Shown: positions 1 through 53,200 of the stretch, one piece after another
How positions within the stretch are numbered: the first letter of the stretch is position 1
How the letters are laid out: every line of letters begins with the position of its first letter
Assembly (NCBI GenBank): GCA_964187785.1
Contig: CAXLNC010001113.1
Coordinates: 124,001-187,742, forward strand
Reading direction: 5' to 3'
Length of the DNA stretch: 63,742 nt
Source: Amphiscolops sp. MND2022
Taxonomy: Eukaryota
The notes under the pieces: generated by a model
Told to the model about the DNA's origin: nothing
Databases searched by the model: none
What the model saw: the letters and a program-made list of their open reading frames with translations, nothing else
Translations under genes and position numbers: made by a program

Positions 1-3000
1 GACACGGATCCCTTTCCAGGGTCTTGCTTAGCCTGTAACCCTGTATACGGCAAACTCACCTGGATGGGAACCAAGCCTAGGAGACTCTCCACCGGTGTCA
101 TCAGTACAACATCCGCCTTGTCGTCAAGAGCATGATCTCCCAAAATCTTTAGAGACTGATTGGACAAAACCACGTAGCCACCTTTCACCTCCTTCATCGT
201 CACGTCCTTCAACATCTCCCATGCGCTTTCAGCCGGCTCGAAGTCGTCATAGATTTTGCTCAGCTGCCATTCATGAATCCACAGGAAGGTTGACGAGAGG
301 TACGGGTGGAGTCTCATCGTAGTGGCCATCATCATTGAGTAGTACATCAGAAGACCAAGGTACTTGAGAATTCCAGAGGTTTCCTTCGCTTCTTGAGCTA
401 TGCGCAAGTCCATCACTGTCTGCTCCAAGGTGGTCACCGGATCATCGATCAGTCGAGGCAAAGTGATCGGTGCCACTTCGGGCGGCTGACTTAACTTAGT
501 GAGATACTCACCCACAACATTAGACAGCCACATCATACTTGTCATCAACGCTGACTGCCATCCATGTTGTCCCAGCCGTTCCACGTCCCCTTTCGGAGCA
601 TTGTCACACAACGACACTTGGATACCCACATTCGCAAAGGTGAACTGAGATGGATCTTGCCCCGAGGTTTGTCCCACTCGTGAGGCCCTTTCCGGGTGAT
701 CGCTTCCTACATCTGGTTCGCCCTTCCGGGTCTGAATGAGCAACTGCGAATAGTCACTCGGCACATAGTCATAGGGCTTAATGAGTTTCCCATTGGAGTG
801 CAGCAGCCACTTTCCAGTGTTGGTTCTGGAGACTGTGAAGTTCAACGACTCCTCCGTGCACTTGCATGCCCTTGCATGAGCTGTTCGGGTCCAGGACAGG
901 TGCGTAACACTGTCATGTTGCTTTCGCATGTTATCACCATGCTTCACAAGAAACGCATCTTCCAACCAATCTTGTAAACCGCACTCCTGACCAAGGTTCA
1001 GTACTAGGTAGATGACATCAACCAATTCAGCTAACACATCGTGTGCAACTCCTGACTTGATGGCCTCTTCGATCTCACGTACCTCCTCAAGAAGCATCCT
1101 CCCATACTGCTGTCCTCTTTCATAACTAACGATTTTCATTGACGTCCCTTCCGGGAGACCCATGACGCTATTGAACTCCCGGGTCAACAGTGCCAGCTGC
1201 TGAAGTGAACATCCAGTAGGTCCTGGGGATACTGCATGAGGTCTTGGGATCTGATCGACCAACTGACTCAATGCCTCGTCCACCTTTTCTGCCCTTCCGG
1301 GTCCAGTCTGCAATGCCGAGATAGAAGTGTCAATGGTTTCATCTTGGGCCTGTTCCTCACGAACGGTGGCCTCTCTCGCCTCCACATCGATCACAGACTC
1401 CTTCGGCTGGACTCTAGGCTCAGCAGATGCCCTTCCGGCGTACAGGTGGACTGGGAAGCCCTTCGACTCAAGATTCATCCAATCACGATCACTCAGTCGC
1501 TCCAAATGGCTAGGAGTGAACAACGTCACAGAGAAGCGCTCCCCTTTGGTCACTTCACGGACTCGATGTTCAATAATGTCAGCCGTGAACTCCGTCCAGA
1601 CCAAAGGAACCGCACACGACTGCCACTCATCATCTCTCAGCATCTCCAGGTGACCGCCCTCATACTGTCCGAAGTTAATGGTGTAGTTGAGATACTCCTC
1701 ATGGTTGCGATAGTCCTTGTGCTTGTTCAATCCTTGTCCTTCCGACAGTTGAGTCACGTATATTCCCAGATAAGGTAGCTCCTTGGAGCAACTCGCCGCT
1801 AGTGCGTGCACCTTCATCAAGACCTCCTGGTAACGTTCCTGGAAAGTCCTCTTCACCACGCATCCCTGCTGCAAGCCTCTATTGGTTTGTGCTCCAAGAA
1901 ACAGTGCTCGCGATCCTCCCGCAATACTTGTCCTGTTATTCTGGTAGGGCCATGCGATTCTCTGGATTGTCTGCTGGGCATCGATAATTTTCTTCATATA
2001 TACTCGTCGTCCACCCTTCATCTCCAGAAAACGGATCGAAGCCGGTCGAGCAAGTGACACCGCGTTTAGGTCACCAGGTGCCTCTCGGGCAAGAAGAGAA
2101 TCTCTGAACTGACCGGCTGTCATGCCGCTGCAGGAACCATTCCGCTTCCAGATATCTGCCATAACTGCCCAAAAGGTTTCTTGGTCCATGTAGTGCATCT
2201 TTGACTTCTCCGTCAGCTCGACCTCTCTGCCTTCCGGCGACTGCACTATCACTCGGATTTTTCCTTTATCCACTTCCGGGAGATACTTCCATCCAGCCAG
2301 TAGAAGCAACCATGACAGCGGCATCAACGGAGTCGCCCCCTCAATAGCCACTGCATGATAATCTTCACCGTCACAGGCCACCACTTGAACCACCATGCCA
2401 GAGACCACCTTTCCGCCGGGTACTGTGCACTGAGCTTCAGCTCCCTTCATTCCCCTTTTCTTTGGAACCACCAAAGCGTTGGCTCCTGTATCCAAGAGAC
2501 AATAGCATCGAACGTCAACGCAGTCCATTGCATTCAAGAGGAGCATCTGAGTCTCGAACGATCCCTTTCCTTTCCCCTTCTTGGCTGCATTGAAACGATC
2601 ATACCGTGCCAATAGTTCCGGAGCAATTTTCAGTGGCTTGCCATCCGTACCAAGGATGTGACCATACTGACAGGCTTCTCCTCGTGTACAGTTGCCTCTG
2701 AAGAAGCGGATACACTGTTGTCCCTTTTTATTCGCTGCAATCTTGGCTGCCTGGTCCGGGTCAGTCTTACCTTTTCCCTTTCCAGGGCTTTCCTTCTGAG
2801 CGCTCGCAACATTGGGTTCGCGAGGAGGGGCAGGTCCTTCAGATCGTAGAGGAGTAGATGGGGTAGAAGTGCCCTTGGCCCCTTCCGGGGGTGTAGCTGC
2901 CTTCGCCTTGGGCTTAGGCTTCGGTTTTGCATCCACGGCATGGGCCTTCGCCGTGTGAGGCAGCCATCCCGTCACCGTCGTCGTCTGATTCAAATAGACC

Positions 3001-8029: not shown

Positions 8030-8037
8030 AGATAGAC

Positions 8038-9489: not shown

Positions 9490-9547
9490 GCCACTGTCAG
9501 CGCGCTCCAAACACACCCAGAAAAAGGGCAGTCGTCCAGCGAGGGGG

Positions 9548-10411: not shown

Positions 10412-13400
10412 ATGGCAGAAGGGTCTGGTCACCTTCCAAATCCCGCAATGGGCAGAGACCTCGTGGCTGGCCATATTCACAAAGACCGTTATGGTCGCAG
10501 CCCGGCACCAGCATCGAGCCATCGCCCTGTAGGGAGAAAAAGAGTCCAAGCATCAGCAGATAGATCTCCTAAGCGGGTAGAACCTCCAGAATTGCCCAGG
10601 TTGAGAGCCCTAGAGGCACAAGCAGCAGCAATCCCTATCTCTAGTTCCGCGGCATCCTCCACCTCTCCCAGAAGCGGATCTTCTCGTGTCAATCCATACC
10701 CAATTGGGGAGGCTACCGAGAGCTCACCCTTGAGATTGTGCCCTCTGTGGCTACCCAAGCTACCCAATCTTGGGAACAGGGAGGATCATTGGATTTGACC
10801 CCGATAAGGAACGAGACTAGCCCTACCACTCCTTCCAATAAAACCATACAGGTTATGAGCCCAAACCTGGGTCAGGGATTGGCATCAGGTTCGACTCAGG
10901 TTGAAGAGGGAGAGATAGAGATGGATACCGCAATGGCCAGAGCTATTCTTCAGTCATGGTCGGAGACAAGGGCTGAAGATGGAACAGTGCAGAGAACATA
11001 CACTCAGTGTGCTCGTGAATGGCCTCTGTCAGAAACGGATTGAAGCTGCACTAAATGTTCTGAAGCGTGCTTGTGAGTATCTCCATGAAGGCATGATGCA
11101 GATGGGAAAGACAGTTGAACAGAAGGCCAATATTCCCAGTGTGGAGGCCGCTGTCAGAGAACTTGCTCATCACACTCAAGAGGTCCGTAATGGAGTGCAA
11201 CGAACAGTGACTCGCCAGACTGAGTTCTCCAACAGGCTGGACAGCATGACAGAGCACAATCAGGAAGCTCGTGGTCGTATGGAGGCATTGTCAGCCCAGG
11301 GTGATCAAGGAGGACGAGAACACATGGCCCTCGCTGTGGAGTATAGGCACTCAATAGACGAGACTCAACGAAAGGTGATTCAGTTGGGGAGCCTTATGGA
11401 ACATTCCCAAGTGGACACTCAGAGACTCGACAAGGGTCTGACTGATCTACGAGAAAATGTCTTCAATAATAGTGTGGCTATTGATCACCTAAAGGAGGAC
11501 ACGCAGCGCGAAGTAGCGAAGCTGAGTACCCTGAGTGGTCAAGCAACAGACATGTCAGTCTATCAACGGCATGCTGCCAGTCACGATCAAGCGCTTACTC
11601 AGTGCCGTACTCAGCTGACAACTCAGGCGCAGCGACTCGATGAAAGTGAACAACACCTTCGGCGTCTCCAACAGGAAGTGGCAGGCTTGACGGGTGAGCC
11701 GACTCCTCGAGTGGAGCAGGGCATCCCGAATCGAGATCCAGAGTTGGCCATCCGCCTGTCACAGCTGGAGGAAGGATTGAAGACTCAGCAAAGGGCGATG
11801 AAGCAGCTCAAAAGGGACAATGCTGAAGACGCCAAGGAGGTGAAGCAGTACCTAGACCAGGTACATGACCTTCTCACTACGACCCTCGAGGCAGTTGGCT
11901 CTACAACCTCCGAGCGGGCTACAGGAGGGATGACGAGGTTGTCCAAGGTGGCCAAAAGAGGAGATTTTAGAGTTGACGTGGAAGACAGTGACTTCTGCAA
12001 GGTGGGAGAGATTGTCCTTATTGGGGGTCAGGAGGCGAGAACAGTCATGGGTAAGAGTAGCCTTATCTTCAAAGTGCCACTGGATGGGGAATATCCCGAA
12101 GGAACGACTGTGAGAACCCTGCGGGAGAATGAATTTCTTCAGCTGGACGGTGAGAATGTGTATGTCTATGCGCAGGATTCAGAGGGACAGAGTCATATGG
12201 TGTGTGGTGTGGACTTGATGCATCGAGCACCCCCTGAGTGGGCAGAAGAAAGGGATGATGTCCAGGACCAAGTCTATTCAGATGACCTGGATCAACGGGT
12301 CCAGAGGGCCGTAGACGCTAGAATGGCGACTCCGAGGCCAGTTGTCTCGGGAGCAGGAGGACCGATGGTACCACCATGGACAGCATCCCATGCCCATGAA
12401 TGGAGTGCCTCGAATGGCCAGACAAAAATTCCTGTGTTGCCTTCTTTTGGAAAGAAGGAGGAAGGTGAGCCAGCGCAGGAACAAGGAGCATCTTATCAAG
12501 GCTGTGTCAAGCAAGAGGAGGATGTTAAGTTCGAGTCCCTGGATGACTACTTCTGCAGAGGAATGGACTCATCAGGACCAGCTTCATGGGATAAAATCCT
12601 TCGAGAAATGGAGCAGAATTCCCTTGAAGACGTGGGCACCATGAATTATCGAGAAGGAGTACGAGAAGAGAAATGGGGAATGTTGGACTTGAAGAGTATA
12701 CAGTTCCCAAAGGTGACCGCTCAATCGGTCAAAAGGGCGACCTTACTGCAGTACTTTGAGGTGGACTTTATCCGAGCTATGGGTATTATCAGCCCTGCAG
12801 CGGCCACCTATGCCAAAGCAGTGATTGCTGGTGTCCACAGAGATCTTCCTGTCTATCGCAAGCGAGATATGAGCACGACTGTCCGCGACTGGACCGGGAA
12901 GATGGTTGAAGAACTGTGGCATACACGCGCTGAAGCAGCGGTGAACTTAGCTTTACAGACAGCAGGGGTATCAGCAGAATCCTTGGAGATGGCGCGAATG
13001 CTAAGGCATGACCCACCAGTGAGGTTGATATTGATGACGGCTTATCATCGGCTGCTGCCCTATCAGTCTAGAGAAGAGGAAGAATTGCAGCAATATGTGA
13101 GGGAACCCCAGGTGGGCGATCAAGGAGCAGTGTCTACTTTTCAGAAGCTTCAGGCATGGAAGAGTGCTGGTCGTCGCTTAAGGCAGATGGGAGGTATGCT
13201 GCCCGGTATTCCTGCCTTGATGACTGCCTTTGACAAGATTTTAGCGGCCTTCAACATTCACAATCAGAGAGGGAATTGGTTCTACCAGACGGAGAGGAAC
13301 CTTCTTCCCATGGTGGACGCGACTCCAGGCCAAGCTGCATTCTTCTTCCACACCGTCGAGGTCAACTTGAACCAGGTCACGACAATGGTGAGCTATCTCC

Positions 13401-13658
13401 CACCTTCTGCTGCGAAAATCCATGCTGTGGATGCAAAGCCCAAGGCAAAGCCTAAGCCAAGGGCAAAGGCTAATAGCTCAGGGGGGGGGAACATCTGCTC
13501 CCACGAGCCCACCGCCTTCCTCTCCAGTGAAGACGGAAGGTCCGATTCCAAAACCTAATGCCCAGGTGGCCGAAAAGGGAGGCTCACCCGGAAAAGGTAA
13601 GAGCAAGGGAGCGGGATCAAGCACTGATAGACCGCCAGTGAACAAGAAGGGCCAACAG
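10412..13658 (+). CDS. Gag-like protein with Ser/Pro-rich N-terminus, long coiled coil (~11100-11900) and conserved core; frameshifts near 10735, 11030 and 13485
   Basis: ORFs 10412..10798, 10738..11043 and 10979..13558 together match the single copy C ORF; position upstream of the zinc finger and protease. Confidence 0.75.
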
Positions 13659-13869: not shown

Positions 13870-14190
13870 GTTGCTTCTGCCTGCTGGATACTGGCGCGAA
13901 TGCCTTGGTACTTCCTCGTAAGGGAGAGATGTCTGGTACTGAAGCTCATTGCACTGTCCCGGGTGGCACCATGGTTCCCGGAACAGTTGTCCAGACACTC
14001 CGGTATGGGGAGGATGACTATCACGTTGTGGCTATTGAGGGTGCGTCTCCACTGATGCCACTATCATGGCTGATCTTGTTGGCAGGATGGTCCTACATGC
14101 CAGTGGTGAAGGATGGGAAAATGGAGGTGACGATCGCATCCCCGAGGGGACTGTCTGTGACGCTTGTCGAGCGTTCAAAGATGCATTATA
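13870..14190 (+). CDS. Retropepsin-like aspartic protease domain
   Basis: CLLDTGANALV, with the catalytic DTG starting at 13887. Confidence 0.88.
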
Positions 14191-14399
14191 TCGACAAGGC
14201 CACCTTCTTCAATGTCCTTCAGGACGCTTGGAAGCGTTGTAAGGCCTCGGATGGCATGGACTATGACCAGCTCAAGAGAGCCCTGTCAATGGAGACGCCC
14301 CATGTGGCAAGTGCAGTGAAGATGGAGCGACCCTCCTCTATCCGTTTCTTGGACATGAACATGAGCCGCAAGGGCTATATGAGGAGGATTGTGGATCTC

Positions 14400-14870
14400 C
14401 AAAGAACAATCGAGTCTATGACTTGGCCAAGTCAGAACAATAGGCCAGGACATGGCCTCTTCTTGGGAGCACCAATAGGGGATATGAGAAAGGATGTGTT
14501 TCCAAGAAGACCTTTGACGCGCAGTATACGCAGATCTTGCGGAGGGTACGTGCGCTGGCCAGATGTTGCCAAAAGACAATCCAGTATATGGGCGTATATC
14601 TGACAAAGTTGGAGTCTGGTCAAGGACTTAATCAGCACAGGGACTTCCGCAACCACGAGAAGTATCTCAACTACACCATCAACTTCGGTCACTATACGGG
14701 TGGACACTTAGAGGTGCTTCGTGACGATGATTGGGAGTCCTGTGCGGCACCGTTGATCTGGGTTGAGTTCACGGCGGACATCATCAAGCATCGGGTAAGA
14801 GAGGTGACTTCAGGTGTGCGATATTCAGTGACCCTGTTTACTCCAAACCACCTGGAGAGGCTGTCCGATG
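14400..14870 (+). CDS. 2OG-Fe(II) dioxygenase domain (TET/JBP-like motif pattern)
   Basis: HRDFRN (14636), FGHYTGGHLEV, KHRV (His at 14789), RYSVTLF (14819); all conserved in copies A and C. Confidence 0.82.
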
Positions 14871-15169
14871 ATGAGGATGAATCTTGAATCGTTTGGTTTC
14901 CCAGTGGACCAGTATGCTGAAAGGAAGACCACCAGTGTCTCTGCCGTGAAAGGCCCCACCGTTGAAGAACTTGACACTTCCGGTGAGGTGGAGATTCCCT
15001 CGACAGCGAGGATTGAGGAGATCCTAGAGAACTCCGAAGAAGCGCTCACTGTCCAAGCGGTGGAGAAGCAAGTCAGAGCTCTATCAGATCCATTGGACTC
15101 CCTGAGTGGTCAGGTGCCACGACCAAGCGCATCTGAGAATCGATCTTCGCGGCTGACTTTGGAGACATG

Positions 15170-15620
15170 TGCCTTGATGACACGGGACTTCAATACCGCG
15201 ATGGGTCTGCCGAAGGGCGAACTTCCTCAGTGCGTGGGTCAAGACAGGGGTTCCGTATATGGACAAATGCTGCGTGAAGAAGTTCAAGAAGTGGAAGAGG
15301 CCGTAGCACGAGGCATTCTTCATGAAGTGCTGGCCGAGTCCGTTGATGTCCTTTACCTTGTGTTCAACTTGCTGCAGGAGTGCGGCCTTGAGAGAGCTGT
15401 TGATCCAGCCTTCTCGCTGAAGCACGAAGACAACATGAAGAAGCAGCATGAGACAGTGACGCACCTGGCTTGTACCAGGAACGCATATGCTCAGTCTACT
15501 GGGAAGTCTGAAAAGGAGTTGGCGTTCACTGTCTCCAGAACTGAAGGAGGTAAGTGGCTCTTGTACTCCCAGGGCAAGCTGATCAAGCCTCATGACTATG
15601 TCTCGAGTGACTTTGACTCC
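15170..15620 (+). CDS. All-alpha MazG/DR2231-like NTP pyrophosphatase (dUTPase-like) domain
   Basis: EEVQE-x15-ESVDVLY (ExxE..ExxD), KHEDNMKK, GKLIKPHDY. Confidence 0.78.
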
Positions 15621-16403: not shown

Positions 16404-16445
16404 TGACAAGTACGGGCCCTCCTTAGGTCTCCTGAGGAGGTGCCC
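16404..16445 (+). promoter_or_regulatory. Putative stop-codon readthrough signal: TGA-CAAGTA, 7-nt spacer, hairpin 16414-16445
   Basis: Upstream and downstream ORFs are in the same frame; an identical arrangement is present in copy C. Confidence 0.8.
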
Positions 16446-16454
16446 TTTGATGCA

Positions 16455-16583
16455 TGCGCAGTGTGCTTTCGCCCATGTGCCCTCTGTGGCCCGAAGCATT
16501 GCATGCTGTGTTACCGTCGAATTCACCCATGGTGTGCCACGTCCCCACATGACGATGCACATCCCATTGTGTGCAGATTTTGC
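16455..16583 (+). other. PHD-like zinc finger with an extra CxxC, N-terminal to the integrase
   Basis: CAVC..CALC..CMLC-x4-H-x2-C-x12-CRFC. Confidence 0.7.
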
Positions 16584-16899
16584 GCCTCTTCCCCTGGTGG
16601 ACGTACTCATTTTCAGGTGCACAATGTTCAGATGAGACAGCGCTTTGTGATCTCTGGGTGCGCTACAGCCATGCCTGAGGTGCTTGAAGAACCCGCCATC
16701 ACGGTGCACTCCTCCGACAAGGACATTGCCAGTGGAGATGAGCATCCCTCTGTGGAAGAGCTACCTGCTGCACGGTGCAATCCAGTTCCCTTAGTGGACC
16801 GAATGGTGTGCGTCCAGGCACATAGGTCAAGCCAGACTGCACCTTTTATAGTTCCGGATATTCACCGTGTTCTTGAAGGAACAGGCATGTTGGAGTGCC

Positions 16900-17750
16900 C
16901 AGACCACAAATTGGACCATGGTGTTCCGGATCCTAAATGTGACTATTGTAAAAGAGCTCTGGGTCCCTTATACAGACATTCGGCCCTGAAGGAGTCAAGG
17001 GAGATTCCGATCCTCACATTTGATTTCTCAGGACCGCACCCCTCCACAGTGCATCCTGCCAAGCAATTGATGGTTATTGTTTGGTGCCTGAGGGAGGTGC
17101 GACTGATTTGGGCAATGGGCGTAGAAAATAGAGATGATCCCCATGTGGTCGCCGGATTACAGGTTGCTCTTGATGATTTGTCCAGCTTAACCGGAGGTTG
17201 CCGAGCACCTGTCCTGCGTCTTCATTCCGACAAAGCAAAGGAGTTCCTTGCGACAAGTGTGCGAAAATTGTTGCGTTCTCATGGCACACGCCAGACCACC
17301 AATTCCGGGTACGATCCTGCCGCAAATGGCATAGCTGAGCGATGGGTAGGTATTATCAAGGTCCGTGCAACGGCACTGCTGGCAGAGCATCGACTTCCTC
17401 CGGACTATTGGACATATGCCTGCAAATGGGTTGCCTATGTGCACAACCATCGTGTTCTGAGCATTCAGCTTAATGCCAGTTATCCACTTTTTGGAGATGT
17501 GGTGGTCGTACATCGTTTCTTGAAGAAACCACCGAGCTTTGAGGATCGTGGGATCACTGGAGTTTGTTTAGGACGCAATCCGTTAGTTTCTGGAGGGGTG
17601 ACAGTGGGAACGGTCTCGGATGGCCTTTTTAATGTGATTGTCACTGCCAAGGTCCGAAAATTGGGGGAGCGTCGTCCTCAGCGATGGAAGCTTCATGTGC
17701 ATCCTACGGAGCCTCGAGCGGCCGCCTATGTGCGCAATGATGGGGAGATC
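16900..17750 (+). CDS. Integrase (HHCC plus DDE core)
   Basis: DHKLDHGVPDPKCDYC; TFDFSGP; LHSDKAKEF; NGIAERWVGIIK. Confidence 0.92.
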
Positions 17751-19181
17751 CGATGGAACCTGAACGACTTAGACGTGGCCACTGTGGAAGAACTGGAACC
17801 AGAAGGTGCCGTTGAAGTGCAAAATCTCCGTTCTCTCGGAATGGGCTGGGCATGGTATGTGAATGACCTCAGCAAATATCTTCCGGATGCGGAGACTCTA
17901 GCCGCAATGGCCCCCACAGATGACGATGTCGTGGGTGTGGATCATGATGTCCCATTGAGTGAGATTGCTCTGGAACCTGAGAGGGTGGATGTGCCCGTTG
18001 AGATCGACCCTTATACAACTCCACTACCTTTTCCTCATGCCGCGCCTGGCCCAGCTGAATATGAGACACTTGCCGGTATGGCACCAGATTTGCTTCCTCG
18101 TTCACAAGATGTGGATCTGGTCGTGGCGGCAATGGATATTCCTCTAGCACCAGCTCTACGTGCTCACTTGAAGTCATGGACGCGCGAAGACCTGAATGTA
18201 CGAGTGTTTCAAGGTGTTCGTCGTGGAGGACCTCCTTCTCACCGCGTCTGGTGTCGTGAGACATATGAGATGAATACTGGCAAGCTCATTGCGCGGGAGT
18301 TCTACAATCCTGATCAATCTTCTTTGGTTCGTTTGCCCACACCGGCACTTCCAGATTGTACACCGATGAATGCCGACCGTCGATCGATTCGCAGTATCTT
18401 CTGGTATTCTGAGACTGATGTCTTGCCCTCCCACCTCTCCCGACTTGTTCCTGGCCGTGTTCTGGCTTCTGCGGCTCCTGCGGGCGGACCTCGCCTACCC
18501 ACCTCGGTCCGGGGGGAGGGTGGTGAGCCGCATATGGCATATGATGCTCAGAGCCAGCAACGTCAGGACTTGACGCCAGATTCCGGGGGAGCCTCAGCGA
18601 AAGGGCAAGAGTCTCCTACCGAAGCTGGAAGCGGGGGAGCTGTGGGCCTCGACCAAGAAGAAGTTCTCTCACAAGATAGCTTTGAGACTGCCATTTCTCA
18701 GGGCTACCGAACAGAGGATGAAGAGGGAAATTGGGATTCCTCCGTTTCCTTGGTGCACCTCGGGTGGTTGAACGTAGAGCTGAAGTCTGACGACTGGGTC
18801 AAGGTAATGGATCAGCCACCGGTCCGAATCATGAAAATCACAATGGATGAGGATAAGAACCGCAAGAACACGAAGAAATTTGTGGTTGAGGAGAATGACC
18901 AAGGAACCTCGGTAAAGACCTATTGTGTTACTGGTCTCGATACGAGTAAGCAACTGGAACTGGTGGAGGCATCGTTTCAGTTGAGATGCAGGATCTTCGA
19001 ATTCAATGCGGTGTCCTTTGCGGCCATTCCTTTGGAACTGGTGCCCCTAGAGGTCGACTATGTTGATGCGTTGTCAAAGCAAGACGTACCGGACTATTTT
19101 GCTGGGCCGTCAATGGCTAAGACACTGACACAAGAGACCCGGGTGGTATTTGGACCGGAAAAGGGGGAGTAGAAAGCAGCA

Positions 19182-21101
19182 ATGCTGGCTGAACTACAAT
19201 CTTTTGCCAAACTGGATGTGTATGAGGCAGTTTCCCGTGCGGACGTAGGCCACCAAGAAATACTTCCTGGCAGGCTGGTTCTTGTGGTGAAACCCAATCC
19301 AGAGGGCGTGAAAGGGAAGAAGAAGGCAAGAATTGTGGTGTGTGGGAATTTCCAGACTATTCATCAGGATGAAATGACCTCTTCAAAGACTCCTTCGTAT
19401 CCTATGCTGAGAATGCTCTTGTCCTTAGCTTCATATCAAGGTTGGCCGATAGAGACGTGGGACGTATCAACAGCTTTCTTGTACGCCAGGTTGTATGGGG
19501 ATAGGGATACGGACCTTGATGGTCAATACATCTATATGAGGCCGCCAAAGGTCATTGAGAAGCTTGGTCTGTTACCGGAAGGGACGATATGGAAGTTGAA
19601 GAAGGCGCTTTATGGATTACGTACTTCACCGCTTGCTTGGGAAGTTGAGAGAGACAATACCCTTGCACAGCTCCAATGGGAAGTTGAAGAACGATGGTAT
19701 GGTTTGGTTCCTGCAAAAGGCAATCCCTGTCTATGGGCGATCGTTGAGCTTGATGCGGGAAATCATTGTGTGCCCGGTGTGGCCAGGCCATCTGCACAGA
19801 CTCTGAGAGCCGAAGAACCAGGGCAGCCGTCAATGGCCAAGAAGTATCGCACAATAGGAATTCAGACAGAAGGTCAGGAGAAACCTGTGAGGTTGCTAGG
19901 AGGACTGGTCATGTATGTGGATGACCTGTTGCTGGCAATGCCGGAATGGCACTTAAGACCTGTGGTGGATCTATTGTTAAAGAAGTATGTTATGAAGCAG
20001 TCGGGTGTTCTCCCTAGTGGGCCACAGAAACAGGATGTGCAGATTGGTTTCCTTGGATGTCGAATAACCAGAGACCAGTATGGTATCATTTTCTGTGACC
20101 AAGAAAAGTACATCCAACACTGCATGCATGAGAATGGGTTTGTTGGTGCAACGCAACAAGTGACGTTGAAGCCCTTTCACCGACCACCCGAAGTGGATGA
20201 GCGACTGCCTGAGGAAGTCTTGTCAGAAGAAACCAAAAGGAAGCATGTTGCAGAGTGCCAGAAGTACATAGGCCAACTGATGTGGCTGGCCACAAGGACA
20301 AGGCCAGACATCTCAGCTGTCCTAGGCATCTGCGCTTCCTTCATATTAAAGACTCCTCAGAAAGTGGCCAATCATTTAGTTGATTTGTGGAGATATGTGT
20401 GGACAACTCGTAGGTATGCAATGTCTACCCTTTCTCCCGCTATGGGCCCATCAAGTAGTTCTCCTCTTCCCGCAATGGGCTCGACAACAGGAGACCAACA
20501 TGGAAGCGATGTGGGTGAGAACATACGTCAAGATGGTTGCCTTGATGGCAGTGAAAGATTATCAATTGACAGACCGGAGTTTCACATCCATGCTTATACC
20601 GATGCCAGTTTTGCTACGTCAGGAGGGAGGAGTCGTTCGGGATTTCTTGTCTGTCTGGTTCAACCTGAAACGGGCGAGTATTCTGTTTTACAATGGTCCT
20701 CGAGGAGACAAACAATCACAGCGTATTCAGCGCCTGAGGCTGAGATAGTGGCAATGTCTGAGGGCATCATGACATCTATCTTGACGTATGATGCAGCAGA
20801 GTTTCTGGGTGTGTGTGTGGGTATAACTCCATTCTTGAAGATCCCAATGAAGACAGACAGTGACACTGGCCTGAAACAGTTAAAGAATCAGTCCATTGTC
20901 GTCAGGAATCGACCTCTCACCAAGAATTACAGCTATTTGCATGATGTGTGCTATGGGACACTGCTCCATCCCCCGTGCATTGAACCTTCATTTCTGCCGG
21001 GAAAGGTACAGAAGGCTGACGGAATGACCAAGATTTTGGGACGGAACCTTCAAATGGAGTTCATGGCCATGTTAGGTATGCGCTCCCCTTCTTACCTCTA
21101 A
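19182..21101 (+). CDS. Copia-type reverse transcriptase plus RNase H; preceded by a copy-specific TAG at 19170
   Basis: KARIVVCGNFQ, WDVSTAFLY, LKKALYGLRTSP, YVDD; RNase H AYTDASFA, WSSRRQ, SAPEAEIVAM, TDS, KADGMTK. Confidence 0.95.
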   Translation: MLAELQSFAKLDVYEAVSRADVGHQEILPGRLVLVVKPNPEGVKGKKKARIVVCGNFQTIHQDEMTSSKTPSYPMLRMLLSLASYQGWPIETWDVSTAFLYARLYGDRDTDLDGQYIYMRPPKVIEKLGLLPEGTIWKLKKALYGLRTSPLAWEVERDNTLAQLQWEVEERWYGLVPAKGNPCLWAIVELDAGNHCVPGVARPSAQTLRAEEPGQPSMAKKYRTIGIQTEGQEKPVRLLGGLVMYVDDLLLAMPEWHLRPVVDLLLKKYVMKQSGVLPSGPQKQDVQIGFLGCRITRDQYGIIFCDQEKYIQHCMHENGFVGATQQVTLKPFHRPPEVDERLPEEVLSEETKRKHVAECQKYIGQLMWLATRTRPDISAVLGICASFILKTPQKVANHLVDLWRYVWTTRRYAMSTLSPAMGPSSSSPLPAMGSTTGDQHGSDVGENIRQDGCLDGSERLSIDRPEFHIHAYTDASFATSGGRSRSGFLVCLVQPETGEYSVLQWSSRRQTITAYSAPEAEIVAMSEGIMTSILTYDAAEFLGVCVGITPFLKIPMKTDSDTGLKQLKNQSIVVRNRPLTKNYSYLHDVCYGTLLHPPCIEPSFLPGKVQKADGMTKILGRNLQMEFMAMLGMRSPSYL

Positions 21102-21279
21102 TGGTGTGTCTCGTCAATTACACGTAATGTGTCGCATGTTGTGCTAAGCTGTGTTTCCTTGGTGGACTGTGTTTGAGAGAATGACTGATGAGATTGAGGC
21201 TGTTCCCGTTATGGGCTAATATTTGTGTGTCTGTCTGGAGCCGTTTACAGGAAAGAGGATCAAGGGTGGCGGTGCGATT

Positions 21280-24200
21280 ATGTCCCACAGGGGGGAGGGA
21301 GCCATCTATCAGGAGGGCCAAGACCGGCCTTCCCAACCTGTTGCCTCTAGTCGGCAAAGGACAAGCACAGCTGGTGCAACTGAGATGGCCCCGAGTGGCA
21401 TTTCTACAGCATCATCCACGCAACCGTCACCACCTCTTCCAACCAGTGACCTACCTAAGGAAGTGCCGCATATGGCAGAAGGAAGGTCACAAATGACCGT
21501 AAAACTCGATCAAGCAGTAGATGCGCGACAATTAGCTGCGCATGATGTGGTACCACGGCTGAGAATACAGCTTGAGGAGATCTTTGAGCCTTCCCCTGTG
21601 GACCAGGTCGACTTATCTCAGACTGTCAATAGTCGAGTGATTATCATTCATGGCCCCACTGGAACAGGAAAATCGACAGTGATCCCATGGGAAGCTATGA
21701 GATGGCTGGAAGAACACTGTTCCCGCAGAGGACGCAAAGCTGGTAGGGTGATTTGTTCACAGCAGAGGAGGAAAGTTACCATCTCCTTGGCCCAGGAGGT
21801 CCGACGTAGACATGGCGAAGTTGGAGTCTCCACAGTGGGCTATCATGTGTCAAGAGACCGCCAAATCACGGATGACACTAGATTGGTTTATCTCACTGAG
21901 GCTATTGGTGTCTTCTCTCTGCTGAATAACAGATCGCCCGGTGTGGCCAATCCGCTAGCAATTGTGATAGCAGATGAAATCCATGAAAGGACCATGTACA
22001 CACAGATGATCATCGGCTTGGCTCGAGATCAGATGTCTCGTAGCACCGGAATGGTCTTGATCCTCATGTCTGCGACAGTTGATATGGAGGAATTGAGAGA
22101 TGCCCTTCCAGGAGCTCGGGAGATTGAAATTGGGAAGCATGAGTTCGCAGTGCACCGCTATTACCTCGAGAGGCCTGTGACTCAGTCTACCAATATTCTT
22201 GAGCAGACAGCACGACTAGTGGTGACCCTGCACCATCAGCATGGCACAACAGATCTGGTGGAGGGTGTCCCGAGCGGCCAATTCTGCGACCATTTCTTGG
22301 TATTTTGTCCAGGCAAGCCTCAGATGAGGGTTCTGGCTTCTATCTTGATAAGATGGCAGGAATTGGGATATACTCGGGGACTGGAAATTGTCCAAATGTC
22401 GAGTGGAGAGGACCCTCGGACCTGGGAGTACTTTGACAAAGCAGTGACAGACTATCCCGTAATGGGCCGTGATCGACCATACTACATGAGTCCTCATGGC
22501 ATCCAGAAAATGAAGCCAAACGCGGGCAAGAATGGTCCACAATATCCTCCCTATGCGGACAAGGACATCGTGACGCAATTATCCCATGTGGTCAAACGGA
22601 AAAGGAAGGTGGGGCTGACGACCAATGTCAACCAGACCGGAGCCACTCTGACTTCGGTTGCTGTGGTGATCTCGACGACAGGCGTCAGGACATGCTCCCC
22701 CAACTTGAGATCCAAAGAGGAGGTCAATTGCATCCAGACGGTGTCCGTGAGTGACCTGATTCAACAGGGAGGAAGGGCTGGACGTGTATGTCCCGGAGAA
22801 CATTATGTGATGGCTTCAGAATCCCAGGTGGTCGGACAGTTTCGAGGAGCAAGTGCACCAGAGCTGCTCAATGCCGATGTGGCACCGCTCATTAGCATTT
22901 GCAAGAGGATCAACATAGATCCACTCAACTTTCCGATCTTGAACATGCCGGATGAGAAGGTGTTGGGAGCCACCACACAGCGAATGAGAATGCTGGAGTT
23001 GCTAGACGATGACGGCAATCTCACCCATCTGGGACAATCACGACTGGTGTTGGACTATACCCCAGAGTGGGCCCGCTTTATTGCCAAGGCATTGGAGTAT
23101 GGAGTGTCGGAGGGAGCTATCCGAATTGCGGCGGTGCTATGCCGAGAAGAAGATCTATACACCCCACATGTTCGTGAATCTCTTTCCCATGTGGACGGTG
23201 ATGTGATGACAATCCTCCATTTGGTATGGTTGGCTGAAGGAATCTTGAAGAGGTTTCACATCACACGAGTCCAGGCACTATCCAACCATGATGCCGCAAA
23301 GGCAACCCTTGAGCGGGCAGGCCTACAAGTCAAAGGGGTGATGCAAGTCATGCAGAACATTGAGCAGCTGCGTGAGTCAATTGCAAACTCAGATCTCCCG
23401 CGTGGGCCCTTGAGGAGATCCTCGGACAAATGCTATGCGACCCTGCTGGTGCATGCTTTGTGGGAGGGGTTCTACATGAATGTGATGATCAAGAGCTTCA
23501 CTGGACAGTACGTGAGCCCTACCTATGGAGGCGAGTGGAGCATCAGCAAGACCACACTGCAATATGCACCCTTGGTGGTCCTCCCGTTGAAGAAGACGAT
23601 CATAGATGGGAACCCTTTCCTCCAGTGGATCACCCCATTGCCAGTTGAGTGGCTTGTCGAACGAGATTGGTGGATCCAGACACATTGGGAGGATAATGAC
23701 TGTCGCATGGTTTACCGCAATCTGGTCGCATGCCCGATATTGCGAGACATGGTGAGCACGGCAAGGCTGTACCCTGGTGGTCGAATCAAGATCATTGAGC
23801 TGAAGGCTATCCCACCAGTGGAAGAAAAGCCGCCAATGGCCGTGACCATCGATAATTGCGCAGTCATGTTGAATAGGTACCTCCTCACAGCCCGAGAGCT
23901 GGAAATCATCTTCGACTTGGTCTCGAGTGACTACTTGGTAACTGCATATGTGTCAGGCTCATATGTCTTGAACAACACGGTCAAGAATGAGGTCACAATG
24001 CAGGTTCTCAAGTGGACAGTGAGCACTTCCAAGTCCAAGAAGCCGTACAAACTGAACACCATTGACAAGCCATCTGTCCAGACACTTGGCGCTTACTCTT
24101 TCATTCCCCGTGAGGACTATCATCAGGAAGCCTGGTTGAGTGGTGGTAGAGAAGTGCAGCTTAAGTCCAATGCGGAAGACCTGGCCTTGTCGCGGATGTG

Positions 24201-27200
24201 GGGCTCCGTTGATGACACAGCCCTTGAAGAGACGAATATGTTCCAGACGGATGCCAGAGACTTGGCAGCAGACCGAGAAGCGGAGGAACATGAGGATAAC
24301 TTCGACTGCTATGGAGAAAAGGAAGTTTCCTCGATGGACAGCATCTTCAAGGAGAATGAGAAGCTCACCAAATGCCGCGAAGGGCACCAGGTCTACGGGT
24401 ATTGTGCTTGGTGCGACGCATCGATACTGAACCCGAATAAGCTTTGGAAGCATTATCTGGACTCACATCAGGTCCTGATGCAAGTGGCGCCTATGTCTCC
24501 TCCAAGCGTGTGGCAGACCCTGATGGGAAGAGAGATGGGAGCGAGAACACCTCAGTTCCAGACACCGCAGGGTCAGTACAAGTACTGGGTACAACCAGCA
24601 AAGAGGGATGGCATTGATACTTTTGTTATTGGGACTACCCAAAGGGGAAACGAGACCCTGGTATCTCTTGGAGAATTGTTTTTGGCAGACAACGGTGCTC
24701 TGCCCTTGGTGGCCACGAGCCCTGCAACACAGGTGCTCTCTCCAAGACAAAAGCCCCCTAATTGCGTGAGGGTTGCCCTGGGTGGCACTGATTACTGGAG
24801 CAAGGTAAAGCTGTATGATATGAATACGCTCCTCTCAATTGGGACCCCAGTCACATCGGACATGGCATTCTTGACGATGTTCAGCGAGTGGGGAGATATC
24901 CAGGGTGGTAAACAGGCTGGAAGAGGAGAGTACAGTTCAGAGGAACTGTATGGCATTCGTCGCTATCCCGACCAACTGAGAATGATGTCTCAAGAGGTGG
25001 AAGATGTGATGAAGTCCCGTGTGGCACCTCTAGATGTTCTCAGGGTTCGAGTGCCACATTGCTCTATGCCGGCCCCAGAGGTGTTGCAGGCGAGAATTAC
25101 ACCAGCCTACCACGAGGATAAAGGGGAAGCAAGGGGGTTCCTTCGTTGTGCCATAGCGGCTAGGCAGCAGAAGGGATATTCGGACTGTTCCACATGCCCC
25201 GAGCGGCAAATCTTCGATCACTTGTGGTTGGATGATTCGGAGTATGTGGCAGAGAGCACACTCCCTTCAAACCCCTTTGCGGGCCAGTGGACTTACGCTG
25301 ACAGCACAGAAGGCGAGAAGTGGAGATGGCTCACCCATGTAGACGTCTGGAGCGTTGCTCAAGAAATTCAGAGAAAAGGGGTGAAGTCAGAACTCAACTA
25401 CCACGAAATGGCAAAGCGGGACAGTGTGAGAAGGGTATGGCCAGTTAGTTTGGTGAGACATCCAGTCCCCAATGAGGCGTCTTCCAATGCCGTGAAGAAG
25501 GTATTGGATCAGTATCCCTGGGTGGACTCCGGCTTGCAGTGGAAAGGCACTATGGTCTTCAAGGAGAGCCCTGGTGAAGACAGGTCAACTCTTTTCGATA
25601 CCACCAAGAAGCCTGGAGTCAAACCCCTGAGCGGGCCTCCCAGTTCTAGCCAGGATGCTTCGTCACTTTCTGCTCCTCCAGCAAAGGCAATGCCTAGTGC
25701 TTTGACAAAGGCTGACACGCCTGCTGGAAAGGCAACTAGTTCAGGGAGGCCAGCAAGTGAGCCCGATATCAAAGACAAGGGAGATGGGACCGCAGGACCC
25801 AAGCCATCTACTCCCTTGAGGGCCGCTTCAGAGTCAGGAATTACTGATCCAACCAAGAAGGAGGATACGTCTGCTGGTCCAAAGGCCGCCTCAACGACAG
25901 TGAGTATGCCGACATCTTCTCCGAAACCCTCGTCCTCAGTGGCATCTATGCACACAGCATCAAGCGCCATGCCAAAGGAAAAGGCTTCATCTGAAGCAAC
26001 TCCGATGTCAGCACCTCCAGCCAAACCCAAGGCAGGACCGGAGACAGGAGGTCTGTCGACCTCGAGAGCCCCGAGTGGTGCAGCAAGCCAGTCGTCTGTG
26101 ACTGCAGGATCCGGTTACCCGACCATTGCAGAGTCGTTGGGACAGAAAAAGGGTCCACCGTTGAAGGCAGCTCCATCCTCGAAGACAACGACAGCGCCTT
26201 CTACCAAGTCAGAAGATACTGGTCATGCTGCCGCGAAAGGCTCTACTTTGGTACCTCCCAAGGATAAGGCTGAACCATCAAATCCACCATCTTCAACGGC
26301 TTCAGTCTCGCAGGTGAAGGAGCCAGCTCAGCCAGCAAGGGCTCCTCGAGCCCCTGCAGTACAACCACCTGTTGAAAAGGATGCCGCGATGTCCTACACT
26401 GAGCAGGTCATGAAGCAGGCTGCCTCAGCAGTTCCCACAGGCAAGCTCACGGATGAGGACTTTGAGAGGATGGCTCAGGAAAGGTGGCAGAGGATACTGG
26501 CTGAATCAACTACCTGTGTCTCAGGCAAGGCTGCGTCTGTTGCTCAACTTCCTCAAGAACTACGAGGCGAGATTCTGCCACCTCAACCATTGTTCTCACC
26601 GATCCGCGGATGGATAGACGGTCTGACACCACCAGTTCACAAGGAAGGTCGAACAATTGAGCTCTCTTTGCCCGGTGTGGTCGGTCTCTTCAAGTGGACA
26701 TTCTTGGCCGAAAGCAGGCACGCAAAGAGACCCGCCCGTACAAGGGTGGAGAGACCAGGCCCTGAGCAGCTAGGCATGGATGCGCTCATCATGATAGTTG
26801 ACCGTTCCACTGGAGATCGCATTCCCTGGAATACCGGTGTGAAGAAAGAGCTGGAAAGAGGCGCATATGCGGCGAGCTATGATCGCGAGAATCCAATGCC
26901 TGGAGACAAGAAGATCATCTTGCACATGCAGCCTATCTCTTACCTGAGCGATGCGAACAAGATTGCATGGATACGAGCATTCTTGGCATGGGCTTACAAG
27001 GCTGTGTTGATCCAAGATGTGAATCCCCAGGTGGGCATGTCCGTTCACACCGGAATGGTGCATTTTCTGAATGAAATGTACTCCCGAGTGAGCGTGAAAG
27101 GAGCCAAGCCACTATCAGAGGTTGGCCAAGGGATTCCGGTTTATGCATCTGGACAGGAGATTCGGACCGGTCGAGAGGGATTGATGACCTCGGATTGGGG

Positions 27201-27463
27201 TAATCCACTCTTCATAGCGGCAGGCCGGAAGATTGTGGACTCCCTTTTCACAGGAGCAAGCTCGAAGAAGGAATCAGACTTGGGTGACAGAATGGAGTCT
27301 GCCTTCAATCTCAGCTTCTGGGAAAAGGAGGGAGCTTTCGACTGGTCTTGGCTCGGTTTGGATCTCGTGAATGAGCGCATGACTGAGGAGCTGTTGGTGT
27401 CCCTTGAGTGGAGTTGTTATCGAGAGTCGGAGATCCAGTTGATACAGACGTTCCTGGACATCT
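21280..27463 (+). CDS. Intronless DEAH/RHA (HrpA-like) SF2 helicase ORF2, >2000 aa, C-terminus truncated
   Basis: GPTGTGKST (21652), DEIHER (21973), MSAT, FCPGK, TTNVNQTG, QQGGRAGR (22762), HA2-like LTHLGQ..LDYTPEWARFI; C2H2-like CAWC..H..H (~24400); low-complexity linker ~25600-26450. Confidence 0.9.
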
Positions 27464-27817
27464 ATAAAGTCCACCTCAAAGTACTGCAGTAAGGTCGCCC
27501 TTTTGACCGATTGAGCGGTCACCTTTGGGAACTGTATTTCTTCAAGTCCAACATTCCCCATTTCTCTTCTCGTACTCCCTCTCGATAATTCATGGTACCC
27601 ACGTCTTCAAGGGAGTTCTGCTCCATTTCTCGAAGGATTTTATCCCATGAAGCTGGTCCTGATGAGTCCATTCCTCTGCAGAAGTAGTCATCCAGGGACT
27701 CGAACTTAACATCCTCCTCTTGCTTGACACAGCCTTGATAAGATGCTCCTTGTTCCTGCGTTGGCTCACCTTCCTCCTTCTTTCCAAAAGAAGGCAACAC
27801 AGGAACTTTTGTCTGGC
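27464..27817 (-). mobile_element. Inverted near-identical duplicate of copy B gag segment 12417-12771
   Basis: The reverse complement matches 12417-12771 with only a few differences. Confidence 0.9.
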
Positions 27818-50276: not shown

Positions 50277-53200
50277 CAGAGAGTTGGTAGCCAGCTCCAC
50301 AGAGCTGACCTGATGAACCCCGCCCTGTGCCACCAGGGGCAGTTGATCAAGCACTGCCATTCCAGTGTAGGGCAACTGGGTCTGATAGGAGGACCAGGAT
50401 GAGGAGATTCTCTACGGGGATCGTGAGTACCACATCTGCCTTGTCTTCCAAAGCGTCGTCTCCCACGACCCTGGATTCCTTGTTCACCAGGGCATAGCCA
50501 TGGCGAACCTCCTTCATGGTCAGATCCTGCATGAACCTCCTTCATGGTCAGATTCTGCATCATCTCCCAAGCACTCTCTGCCGGTGCAAAGTCAGCATAG
50601 ATCTTGGCCATCTGCCAATCATGAATCCACAAGAATGCTGAGGACAAGTAAGGATGCAGATGCAGGCTCAAGGTCATTTGGACTGCAAAGTAGATCAACA
50701 CGGTAAGGTTCCTGAGCATAGCTGAGCTGTCAAGGGTGCTCCATGCTACACGCAAGTCCACCAGTGCTTGTTCCATAGTGCCTAACGGATCGTCCACTAG
50801 TCGTGGACGAGCCCGCTTGGGGACAGTGGTTATATCTTCACCCATCCGGTGAAGGAACTCGCCAGCTACATTCGCCATCCACATGCATGAAGTCATCAAT
50901 GCTGGCTGCCATCCATGATGATGTTCTTCGCCAGAAATGCGCATAGAGGAGTCTATAGACGCAGCGGCCACTTGGACACCCACATTTGCAAACGTATACT
51001 GAGAAGTGTGAGGTCCTGACGAGTGTGCCTTAGGTGCTTGTTCTCGTCCATTCGCGGACTCCTCTGTGGCAATCATTCTGAGGCTGGACTCGAAGTCACT
51101 GGAGACATAGTCATGGGGCTTGATGAGTTTGCCCTTTGAGTACAGAAGCCACTTCCCTCCTTCCGTTCTGGAGACAGTGAATGCCAACTCCTCTTCAGAC
51201 TTTCCTGTTTTCTGGACATACTCTTTTCTAGTGCACGCCAAGTGAGTCACCGTCTCATGCTGCTTCTTCATGTTATCTCCATGCTTCAATAAGAATGCCG
51301 CTCAATAGCACGTTCAAGTCCACACTCCTGTAGCAAGTTGAAGACAAGGTAGAGCACATCAATGGACTCAGCTAACACTCCATGAAGGATGCCGCCTTCC
51401 ACGGCATTCTTCACTTCTTGAATCTCTTCCCATAACATCTGTCCATATGCGGAACCCCTTTCTTTGCCAATACAACGAGGAAGCTCGCCTTTCGGCAAAC
51501 CCATCGCAGCGTTGAACTCCCCGAGTCAACAATGCACAAGAGTCCAGTGTCAGCTGCTCTGCTCGATTCTCAGATGCATTGGGTTGCGGAACTTGTCCAC
51601 TCAGGGATTCCAATGGGTCTGACGGAGCTCTGACTTTCTGCTCTACAGCTTGACCACTGTGGGTTCGGGGGAATTCTCTAGAATCTCTGCAGTCTCCTCC
51701 GTAGATGGAGGCTCCTTTCCCAGAGGATCCTTCACCACAGACGACTTACAAGAGCCACATTCAGCATATCTGTCCACTGGGAAACCAACGATTCAAGATT
51801 CATCCAATCTTCACGAGACAGTCGCTCCAAGTGATTTGGGGTAAACAATGTCACAGAATAACGCACTCCCTTGGTCACCTCTCGTACTCTATGCTGAATA
51901 ATATCTGCAGTAAATTCCACCCAAACCAATGTGCCGCACAGGACTCCCAGTCTTCATCACGGAATACCTCCAAATGTCCTCCCAAGTAGTGGCCAAAGTT
52001 GATGGTGTAGTTAAGATACTTCTCATGGTTGCGGTAGTCCCTATGCTGGTTAAGTCCTTGACCCGCTTCCAGTCTCGTCAAAATATATGCCCACATAGGG
52101 GATAGCCTTTTGACAGCATCTGGCCAGCGCATGGACTCTGAGCAGTACCGGAGTATACTGATCATCAAAGGTCCTTCTGGAAACGCAACCCTTCTCATAG
52201 CCTCTGTTGGTCTGGGCTCCCAAGAAAAGGCCTCGTGATCCTCCAGCAATACCAGGCCTATTATTCTGACTTGGCCATGTCATCGTCTCCATGATCTTCT
52301 GGAGCTCCACAATCCTCTTCATGTAGCCTTTCCTGCTCATATTCATGTCCAGGAAGCGAATCGAGGAGGGACGCTCTACCTTTACTGCACGGCCTCATGG
52401 GGCAATTCCGCAGCTGACAGGGCCCTCTTCAGCTGGTCATAATTCATGCCATTCGAGGCCCTGCAACGATCCCATGCATTTCGAAGGACATTGAAGAAGG
52501 TGGCTTTATCCATGTAATGCATCTTAGAGCGCTCGACAAGCGTCACGCTTGTTCCGCTCGGGAAGCAATCGTCACCTCCATCTTCTCATCCTTGACAACT
52601 GGCATGTAGGACCACCCTGCCAACAGAATCAGCCACGACAAAGGCATCAGTGGAGAGGCACCTTCTATGGCCGCCACGTGGTAATCGTCTTCACCATATT
52701 GTAGTGTCTGCACTATCTGTTCCAGGGACAACAGTGCCACCCGGGACTGTACACTGAGCTTCTGTTCCAGCATCTCAGCCTTTCGAGGCAACACTAAGGC
52801 ATTCGCGCCGGTATCCAGCAAACAGAAGCATCGAGAGTCCATCTGCTCAATAGCATTCAACATGAGCATCTGTGCATGGACAGTCGTCTCCGGCTTCTTT
52901 CCTTCTCGTCGAGCTGCGGAATACCGGTCATATCTTTCCAGCAACTCCGGTGCAATCTTCAGAGGCTTCCCGTCAGTGCCGAGAATGTGTCCATATTGAC
53001 ATTGATCACCTCTTGTGCAAGTCCCTCGATAGAATCGAATGCACTGCTGACCCTTCTTATTGAGAGGAGGCCTATCAGTACTAGAACTGGCCCCTTTGCT
53101 CTTACCTTTCCCAGGTGATCCACCTTTCTCGGCACTTGGGCAGTAGGCTTTGGGATCGGCCCCTCCGACTTTACTGGAGAAGATGGTGGTGGACTCGTGG

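Follow-up and report, generated by a model that had tools for sequence, protein, structure and literature searches.

What use would a retrotransposon have for an oxygenase built into its own Pol polyprotein? This question is raised by a 63,742-nucleotide stretch of contig CAXLNC010001113.1 (assembly GCA_964187785.1 of Amphiscolops sp. MND2022, positions 124,001 to 187,742 of the forward strand; hereafter the window), which contains three homologous copies, A, B and C, of one very large retroelement family; features that recur among them are not independent occurrences. An initial annotation, made from the sequence alone, had proposed that a 2-oxoglutarate (2OG)/Fe(II) dioxygenase domain is embedded in the retroelement polyprotein, and Pfam matches, homologues and the modelled fold all bore this out. 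From its conserved residues, the domain is a predicted catalytically competent Fe(II)/2OG dioxygenase. That it belongs to an undescribed family and serves as a nucleic-acid base oxygenase packaged with Pol is the reading towards which we lean, with the balance of probability still tipped slightly against it.

Copy C was taken as the reference, being the only one of the three window copies with an intact dioxygenase. Its domain comprises 208 residues in an uninterrupted frame on the minus strand (1434..2057) and was matched by the Pfam family 2OG-FeII_Oxy_3 (PF13640) with 26.2 bits and an E-value of 1.6e-5. The domain of copy A lies at about 14319..14921 on the plus strand, where tblastn with the copy C protein gave matches in three frames, in agreement with the list of open reading frames (ORFs), and that of copy B was located by tblastn and motifs at about 51759..52382 on the minus strand; both are frame-interrupted. 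The HxDxxN box, distal His and RxS motif described in the initial annotation were found in all three copies, as HRDFRN (14636-14653), KHRV (14786-14797) and RYSVTLF (14819-14839) in copy A, as HRDYRN (from 52045), QHRV (from 51896) and RYSVTLF (from 51863) in copy B, and as HKDYRN (1721-1704), EHRV (1571-1560) and RFSVTLF (1538-1518) in copy C. The frame changes of copy A, near 14455-14475 and 14870-14877, leave all three motifs in the middle piece, whereas those of copy B, near 52100 and 51930, bracket the HxD strand and put it out of frame with the rest of the domain. These copy-specific frameshifts represent decay of individual insertions. About 150 residues upstream of the dioxygenase is an LLDTGA motif of retropepsin active-site type, read in translation (copy C 2463-2498, minus strand; copy A 13881-13916, plus strand). 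The statement that the dioxygenase directly follows the protease thus stands at the motif level, although no Pfam protease model matched.

The HMMER scan of 1.84 billion representatives yielded 228 homologues at E ≤ 1e-3. An alignment of 37 family sequences (A1) was the basis of the conservation counts and of an AlphaFold (AF2) model of the copy C domain, which had a predicted local distance difference test (pLDDT) score of 93.7 and a predicted template-modelling score of 0.90. The model consisted of an N-terminal alpha/beta extension, an eight-stranded jelly-roll, or double-stranded beta helix (DSBH), and two C-terminal helices, and Foldseek matched it to many 2OG oxygenases with a probability of 1.00. 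As modelled, the domain has the DSBH fold and is a member of the 2OG/Fe(II) superfamily. The iron triad is conserved in A1 (H113 in 35/37, D115 in 34/37 and H164 in 36/37 sequences; domain numbering), as are the 2OG-binding residues R174 (31/35) and S176 (31/34) and the Asn three residues after the Asp (N118, 32/36), and the family consensus of the HxDxxN box reads HRDYHN. This conservation holds across lineages that are 25-35% identical, and the catalytic residues align with their equivalents in the structure 6n1f, in PiuC and in Naegleria Tet. Gly130 is invariant in A1, in which the YxGGxL strand, the G-A-x-T-x-R-G loop and, at the C-terminus, the W..L...GFP helix are conserved as well. The ratio of nonsynonymous to synonymous substitution rates (dN/dS) between copies A and B was 0.05-0.06 for the domain, 0.10 for the reverse transcriptase (RT)/RNase H region and 0.085 for gag, each over short segments; the comparison was limited to this pair because dS was saturated against copy C and against two further loci (L002 and L003), which are 3x long-read contigs with obvious frame errors. 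The low dN/dS points to strong purifying selection on the domain, and given this and the conservation, the element is predicted to need an active enzyme.

Among Pfam families, the P4H-like PF13640 was the best, matching 18 of the 37 members at E ≤ 1 (best E 5.6e-7); several close members bear it in the precomputed annotation of the database, and copy C scored 0.8 bit under its cut-off of 27 bits. The family Asp_Arg_Hydrox (Asp/Asn beta-hydroxylase) matched three members, above its cut-off only in the homologue P0142. Tet_JBP (PF12851) matched a single member, again P0142, with an E-value of 0.0044 and a score of about 15 bits where the cut-off is 34.9, and a search from P0142 for Tet_JBP-annotated relatives recovered one paralogue, which lacks that annotation. 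AlkB (PF13532) matched none of the 37. When the PDB was searched with profiles, 6n1f, an uncharacterised protein of Burkholderia, ranked highest (E 2.3e-4 to 7.7e-3), followed by PiuC-type hydroxylases (E 1e-3 to 2e-2) and, in third place, by Naegleria Tet (E 0.05-0.47), which could be aligned over the entire core so that the catalytic residues coincide; a single-sequence PDB search of the domain gave no match. The hhalign probabilities were 47% for E. coli YbiX and 4% for E. coli AlkB. The only NCBIfam match (17 bits) was to a PiuC-type model, the search of PHROGs with the dioxygenase gave one weak match to a family of unassigned function, and tblastn of the domain against 50,697 phage genomes returned no match.

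The fold search placed the PHD/P4H enzymes, AlkB, NMAD-1, ALKBH5/6/7, NgTet1 and CcTet all at template-modelling (TM) scores of 0.43-0.55. The nominally highest scores were those of NgTet1 (0.55) in the PDB and of a phage protein annotated as JBP1/TET (0.61) in BFVD, a set of viral models; CcTet scored 0.53, and AlkB, NMAD-1, P4H and 6n1f scored 0.50-0.54 against the domain. The gaps between families amount to only about 0.05, and the best Foldseek match by E-value was a prolyl hydroxylase. Profile and structure comparison, as proposed in the initial annotation, thus agreed with a DSBH fold, while the best profiles were P4H-like and the fold search did not discriminate among TET, AlkB and P4H.

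The TET/JBP-like signature reported for the domain was not supported. Besides the profile result and the ranking of Naegleria Tet behind 6n1f and PiuC, neither HxDxxN nor RxS is diagnostic of TET, because the corresponding sequences are HKDNLD and R-I-G in Naegleria Tet, whereas 6n1f, which is not a TET protein, has R-T-S. Mammalian TETs carry H-[RK]-D-x-H-N and R-I-S, the first of which also occurs in human PHD2. Membership in TET/JBP failed the profile test, with one of 37 members matching. The accompanying view that the domain is not AlkB-like was upheld, and membership in AlkB is ruled out by the lack of a profile match, by the hhalign result and by the absence of RxxxxxR, the residue six after R174 being Phe, Tyr or His where E. 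coli AlkB reads RYNLTFR. We read the domain as a separate DSBH family that would lie between the PiuC/P4H-like and minimal-Tet-like neighbourhoods, with the TET/JBP proteins CryTJ1 and AmpTJ1 considered by description only.

The long homologues were polyproteins in which the 2OG domain is followed by the integrase core (rve) and then by the RT (RVT_2), and P0142 ends with an integrase N-terminal motif. The only named homologues came from the dinoflagellate Amphidinium carterae (EukProt proteins); a protein search with the RT likewise found named relatives in A. carterae, at 42-48% identity, the rest being ENA proteins. The dinoflagellate link guessed in the initial annotation agrees with these named relatives, and the window elements are probably of dinoflagellate origin, although searches of the window for a DinoSL relic and for Rfam families both came up empty. 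One ENA assembly with close relatives also contains a lineage that is only about 28% identical. The recurrence of the domain in diverged element lineages therefore suggests an old acquisition, after which the domain diversified along with the elements. Judged from its homologues, the domain may occur in more than one retroelement class. In the A. carterae protein P0102 (residues 115-330 and beyond), the dioxygenase is followed by a stretch resembling the initial RT motifs found in retroelements other than copia.

Directly after the dioxygenase is a MazG/PRA-PH-like, all-alpha nucleotide pyrophosphohydrolase domain of about 170 residues (copy C 738..1253, minus strand; copy A about 15120-15650, plus strand; copy B about 51520-50530, minus strand). 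Pfam gave 22.0 bits for PRA-PH (cut-off 21.3) and 18.1 bits for MazG, and PHROG 671, a nucleotide pyrophosphohydrolase, matched with an E-value of 6.4e-9. The metal-binding motifs of copy C are EExxE (1062-1094) and ExxD (1008-1034), whose acidic ligands are invariant in a second alignment (A2). The model was helical, with a mean pLDDT of 71 and about 90 in the core, and all of its top fold matches were dCTPase, iMazG, DR2231 or HisE, at a weak E of 0.1-1. By profile and motif, the domain is assigned to the MazG/HisE-type all-alpha NTP pyrophosphohydrolases. It was found in the window lineage and in one lineage that is 48% identical (P0019), whereas the search for it in the distant A. carterae lineages, where the dioxygenase is retained, detected none; the dioxygenase is therefore independent of it. 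The literature searched contains no description of a retroelement with a MazG-like domain. The dUTPase of retroviruses and LTR (long terminal repeat) retrotransposons (PMC6431247) resembles it as an accessory nucleotide-hydrolysing domain in the same Pol region; however, the MazG-like domain is all-alpha and its fold is unrelated to that of trimeric dUTPase, making the two non-homologous analogues.

Since the dioxygenase is made as part of Pol, it would be packaged with the element RNA and the RT, and would there most likely oxidise a methyl group on a nucleic-acid base. One candidate target is the RNA template, from which N-methyl marks such as N1-methyladenosine (m1A) might be removed; because m1A blocks reverse transcriptases, a specific version in which the RT is accompanied by an enzyme that erases the mark oxidatively is attractive. 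Other candidates are new cDNA or integrated copies, in which thymine could be converted to 5-hydroxymethyluracil (5hmU), or 5-methylcytosine (5mC) or 5hmU be oxidised. The element would thereby evade or mimic the control that the host exerts on transposons through base modification. The enzyme would then function much as AlkB does in plant RNA viruses and in orchid Gypsy elements, or as TET/JBP does in fungal DNA transposons, while belonging to neither family. The nucleic-acid base hydroxylase suggested in the initial annotation is thus still plausible. Plant RNA-virus AlkB domains act on nucleic acids. The fuller version of this proposal, in which a new base-oxygenase family in a dinoflagellate copia-like Pol works beside a MazG-like deoxynucleoside triphosphate (dNTP) pyrophosphohydrolase and edits marks on the element's own RNA, cDNA or integrated DNA (by removal of m1A, or by addition or removal of 5hmU or oxidised 5mC), is put forward only tentatively.

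Several observations lean towards a nucleic-acid substrate. The adjoining domain is predicted to act on nucleotides, and by analogy, the 2OG oxygenases of transposable elements described in the literature searched act on nucleic acids. The host lineage also relies heavily on base modification: in dinoflagellates, much thymine is replaced by 5hmU, which silences transposable elements (PMC11572971), m1A is unusually abundant in dinoflagellate mRNA (PMC11549093), and other retroelements of this host group have captured DNA methyltransferases (PMC5890265). The alignment with Naegleria Tet covers the whole core and places the family Asn on the residue three after its Asp, and the model reached its highest TM-scores with Naegleria Tet and the phage protein annotated as JBP1/TET; both are suggestive of nucleic acid. 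The median isoelectric point (pI) of the domain across members, most of which are basic, is about 9, which was counted in the same direction as a crude substitute for pocket and electrostatic analysis. Against a base oxygenase stand, in turn, the near-total failure of the Tet_JBP profile and the complete failure of the AlkB profile, so that no nucleic-acid oxygenase family was matched at significance, as well as the prolyl hydroxylase at the head of the Foldseek E-values and the narrow TM-score gaps. The strongest profile affinities are with PF13640, PiuC/YbiX-type and Asp/Asn beta-hydroxylase families, whose characterised relatives act on proteins or lack an assigned substrate. Furthermore, the domain copy from the window is itself acidic, with a pI of 6.2, an element-encoded 5hmU writer would be counter-intuitive if 5hmU silences transposons, and packaging, proteolytic release and substrate are all assumptions.

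The main rival is a protein hydroxylase of prolyl, lysyl or aspartyl type that would favour retrotransposition by acting on the element's own Gag/Pol or on a host protein, such as a translation or chromatin factor; we consider it unlikely, while taking it seriously. It would account for PF13640 being the best Pfam family, in the precomputed annotation as in our searches, for the Asp_Arg_Hydrox match in P0142 and for the presence of PiuC and YbiX among the best PDB and hhalign matches, with which the domain has the YxGGxL strand and an H-x-V-x-x-V-x-x-G-x-R pattern in common. The top Foldseek matches, moreover, include a Dictyostelium PHD and the Pseudomonas EF-Tu prolyl hydroxylase, and giant viruses encode P4H-like proteins. 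Nevertheless, PF13640 is a broad catch-all whose cut-off the query does not reach, the fold scores of AlkB and Tet equal those of P4H, and PiuC and 6n1f have no established substrate, the literature searched containing nothing on that of PiuC. In the same literature, no protein hydroxylase encoded by a retroelement or an RNA virus was described, and the predicted activity of the adjoining domain on nucleotides also speaks against one. A genuine TET/JBP-family hydroxylase of thymine (or 5mC), writing 5hmU on element cDNA, is improbable in view of the 36 members that fail the Tet_JBP profile, the better scores of 6n1f and PiuC, the absence of either supposed signature motif from Naegleria Tet and the reported role of 5hmU as a silencing mark of transposable elements. 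Such an enzyme would fit the retention of the HxDxxN Asn in 32/36 members, the closeness of the family consensus HRDYHN to the H-[RK]-D-x-H-N of mammalian TETs, the whole-core alignment of Naegleria Tet at an E-value down to 0.05 and the best TM-scores, which were to Tet-type proteins. The verified dinoflagellate 5hmU writer CryTJ1, which has a critical HRD motif, was itself discovered by iterative Tet_JBP searches as a 'highly divergent' homologue (PMC11572971; preprint 10.1101/2023.11.30.569493).

More improbable still is action on a free nucleotide or small metabolite instead of polymers, in which the dioxygenase and the MazG-like domain would together alter or police the dNTP pool of the RT. 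The two domains do stand in tandem in both the window lineage and the P0019 lineage, and the MazG-like domain has its top fold matches among dCTPases capable of binding 5-methyl-dCMP; against this, no MazG-like partner was detected beside the dioxygenase of the distant A. carterae lineages, and we know of no 2OG oxygenase in a related family that acts on free dNTPs. The idea of a decayed passenger, a captured fragment of a host gene with no role in the element, starts from the frameshifts in two of the three window copies. These frameshifts are copy-specific and lie in otherwise decayed insertions, the catalytic residues are kept across lineages of 25-35% identity, dN/dS is about 0.05 and copy C is intact within an 899-codon frame; the captured-pseudogene reading was therefore rejected on conservation, dN/dS and the intact copy, and retains hardly any probability.

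Oxygenases of the 2OG type are already known from mobile elements. The AlkB of an orchid Ty3/Gypsy element is an RNA m6A (N6-methyladenosine) demethylase (PMC9289625), and this protein and the plant virus AlkB domains resemble the present case in that a 2OG/Fe(II) domain resides in a very large LTR-type element or a viral polyprotein and in the proposed removal of a host base modification directed against the element. However, the orchid and virus domains clearly belong to the AlkB family, near plant ALKBH9/10, which the domain described here does not, and the orchid AlkB occupies a separate extra ORF whereas the present domain sits inside Pol, between protease and integrase in copia order. 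The named relatives here, unlike those of the orchid and virus domains, are from a dinoflagellate. TET/JBP dioxygenases are encoded by fungal DNA transposons, and a 2025 survey states that TET/JBP enzymes are not encoded by any retrotransposon (PMC12730594). With these enzymes, including Naegleria Tet1 (PDB 4lt5/5cg8), CryTJ1 and AmpTJ1, the domain has in common a DSBH core in which HxD, the distal His and the Arg line up and, with the fungal ones, the location on a transposon; to Naegleria Tet it is also linked by the aligned family Asn and by a TM-score that is the highest by a small margin. It differs from them in leaving the Pfam Tet_JBP profile unmatched and in having no Cys-rich or other TET accessory region. 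The PF13640 group, comprising the PKHD-type PiuC and YbiX and Burkholderia 6n1f, offers the best profile matches, the YxGGxL strand and the His-to-Arg pattern given above, as well as an R-x-S in 6n1f. The scores are nonetheless marginal (E 2e-4 to 1e-2), the N-terminal half, the G-A-x-T-x-R-G loop and the C-terminal W..L...GFP helix remain unmatched, and these are free-standing bacterial enzymes whereas the present domain is part of Pol.

Within dinoflagellates, retrotransposons with a captured DNA methyltransferase (DNMT) have been described, whereas the abundant Copia elements, reported to be the most abundant retrotransposon superfamily in Symbiodinium genomes, lack DNMT (PMC5890265). The DNMT elements are comparable in host group and in having captured a nucleic-acid-modifying enzyme, but the enzyme is a methyltransferase and the element classes are others. 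In the literature searched, no 2OG oxygenase was described in dinoflagellate copia elements, and the Symbiodinium copia paper covers integrase, RT and RNase H only. New here are the enzyme family, its position inside Pol, the host group and the pairing with a MazG-like domain.

Mobile elements or viruses with a base-modifying oxygenase of their own form a short list: plant RNA viruses and orchid Gypsy elements have AlkB, and fungal DNA transposons have TET/JBP. A conserved and selected dioxygenase within Pol is a concrete, clonable candidate for an element-side countermeasure, to which the pairing with a nucleotide pyrophosphohydrolase adds weight. If it is a base oxygenase, it would be the first one encoded by a retrotransposon outside the AlkB family and a direct player in the long-standing puzzle of DNA and RNA modification in dinoflagellates. 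If the substrate is a protein, the domain would still give an LTR retroelement a new kind of accessory enzyme, and the 228 members detected would make up a new DSBH family.

The element that carries the dioxygenase was delimited from the three copies. Copy A begins at about 10095 on the plus strand and reaches at least position 27492. On the minus strand, copy B extends from about 56620 to 41281 and copy C from about 6100 to the window start. Copies A and B are 80% identical in nucleotides across 15.4 kb (10095-25441 against 56620-41281), and copy C is 65-74% identical to both. In copy A, the order is a gag-like ORF, a CCCH finger, the LLDTGA protease motif, the dioxygenase, the MazG/PRA-PH-like domain, rve, RVT_2 with RNase H and a separate helicase ORF. 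The gag-like ORF (10979..13558, plus strand) has a long coiled-coil region and no Pfam match. It is followed in the neighbouring frame by a zinc finger C-x8-C-x5-C-x3-H (13659-13720, plus strand; equivalent in copy C at about 2700-2760, minus strand), which scored 19.5 bits for zf-CCCH against a cut-off of 20.5. This finger upstream of the protease is thus of CCCH type and not the usual CCHC knuckle of retroelements; a more distant lineage (L004) gave a faint CCHC match. Gag and Pol are in different frames that overlap near a Lys/Pro/Ala-rich AKPKAKPKP stretch (13400-13560, plus strand; 2940-3200, minus strand), with a junction that is not the same in copy A as in copy C.

The Pol frame of copy C is open and stop-free over 899 codons (3..2699, minus strand) and runs off the window start, with the CCCH finger, protease motif, 2OG domain, MazG-like domain and pre-integrase start in this order. 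In copy A, the integrase ORF spans 16440..19172 (plus strand; rve 23.8 bits, E 5.4e-5) and the ORF of the copia-type RT and RNase H spans 19182..21101 (plus strand; RVT_2 68.6 bits). From the order protease, integrase, RT, RNase H and the copia-type RT, the carrier is classed as Ty1/copia-type, and the homologues have the same order. A second ORF of 2089 codons (21223..27492, plus strand) has a DEAD/DEAH helicase domain near its N-terminus (Pfam DEAD 27.8 bits) and a long, Ser/Pro/Ala-rich C-terminal part without a family match. It is considered to belong to the element because it is common to copies A and B, in the latter as a broken version (about 45450-41200, minus strand), within which copy B is apparently truncated. 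In the related database protein P0290, RVT_2 is fused with helicase domains; together with the helicase ORF of copies A and B, this gives an element of at least 15-17 kb. No flanking LTRs were found around copies A or B within the window by a direct-repeat search (8400-10100, 27500-31000, 56600-58560 and 37100-41300), and the element ends may lie outside the window or have been lost or rearranged.

Other features were noted in and around these insertions. A 355-bp inverted duplicate of a piece of the copy A gag (27464-27817 against 12417-12771, 98% identical) begins 29 bases short of position 27492, where the second ORF ends, and could reflect either a rearrangement or part of a nested insertion. 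Outside the elements, a 239-bp inverted repeat pair (9100-9336 against 36371-36609) is 94.6% identical, and a degenerate tandem repeat block lies between N gaps near the window end (62583-63519). A host-like ORF at 7912-8637 on the minus strand, broken by an N gap at 8138-8337, resembles by eye the N-terminus of a cation-diffusion-facilitator (zinc transporter).

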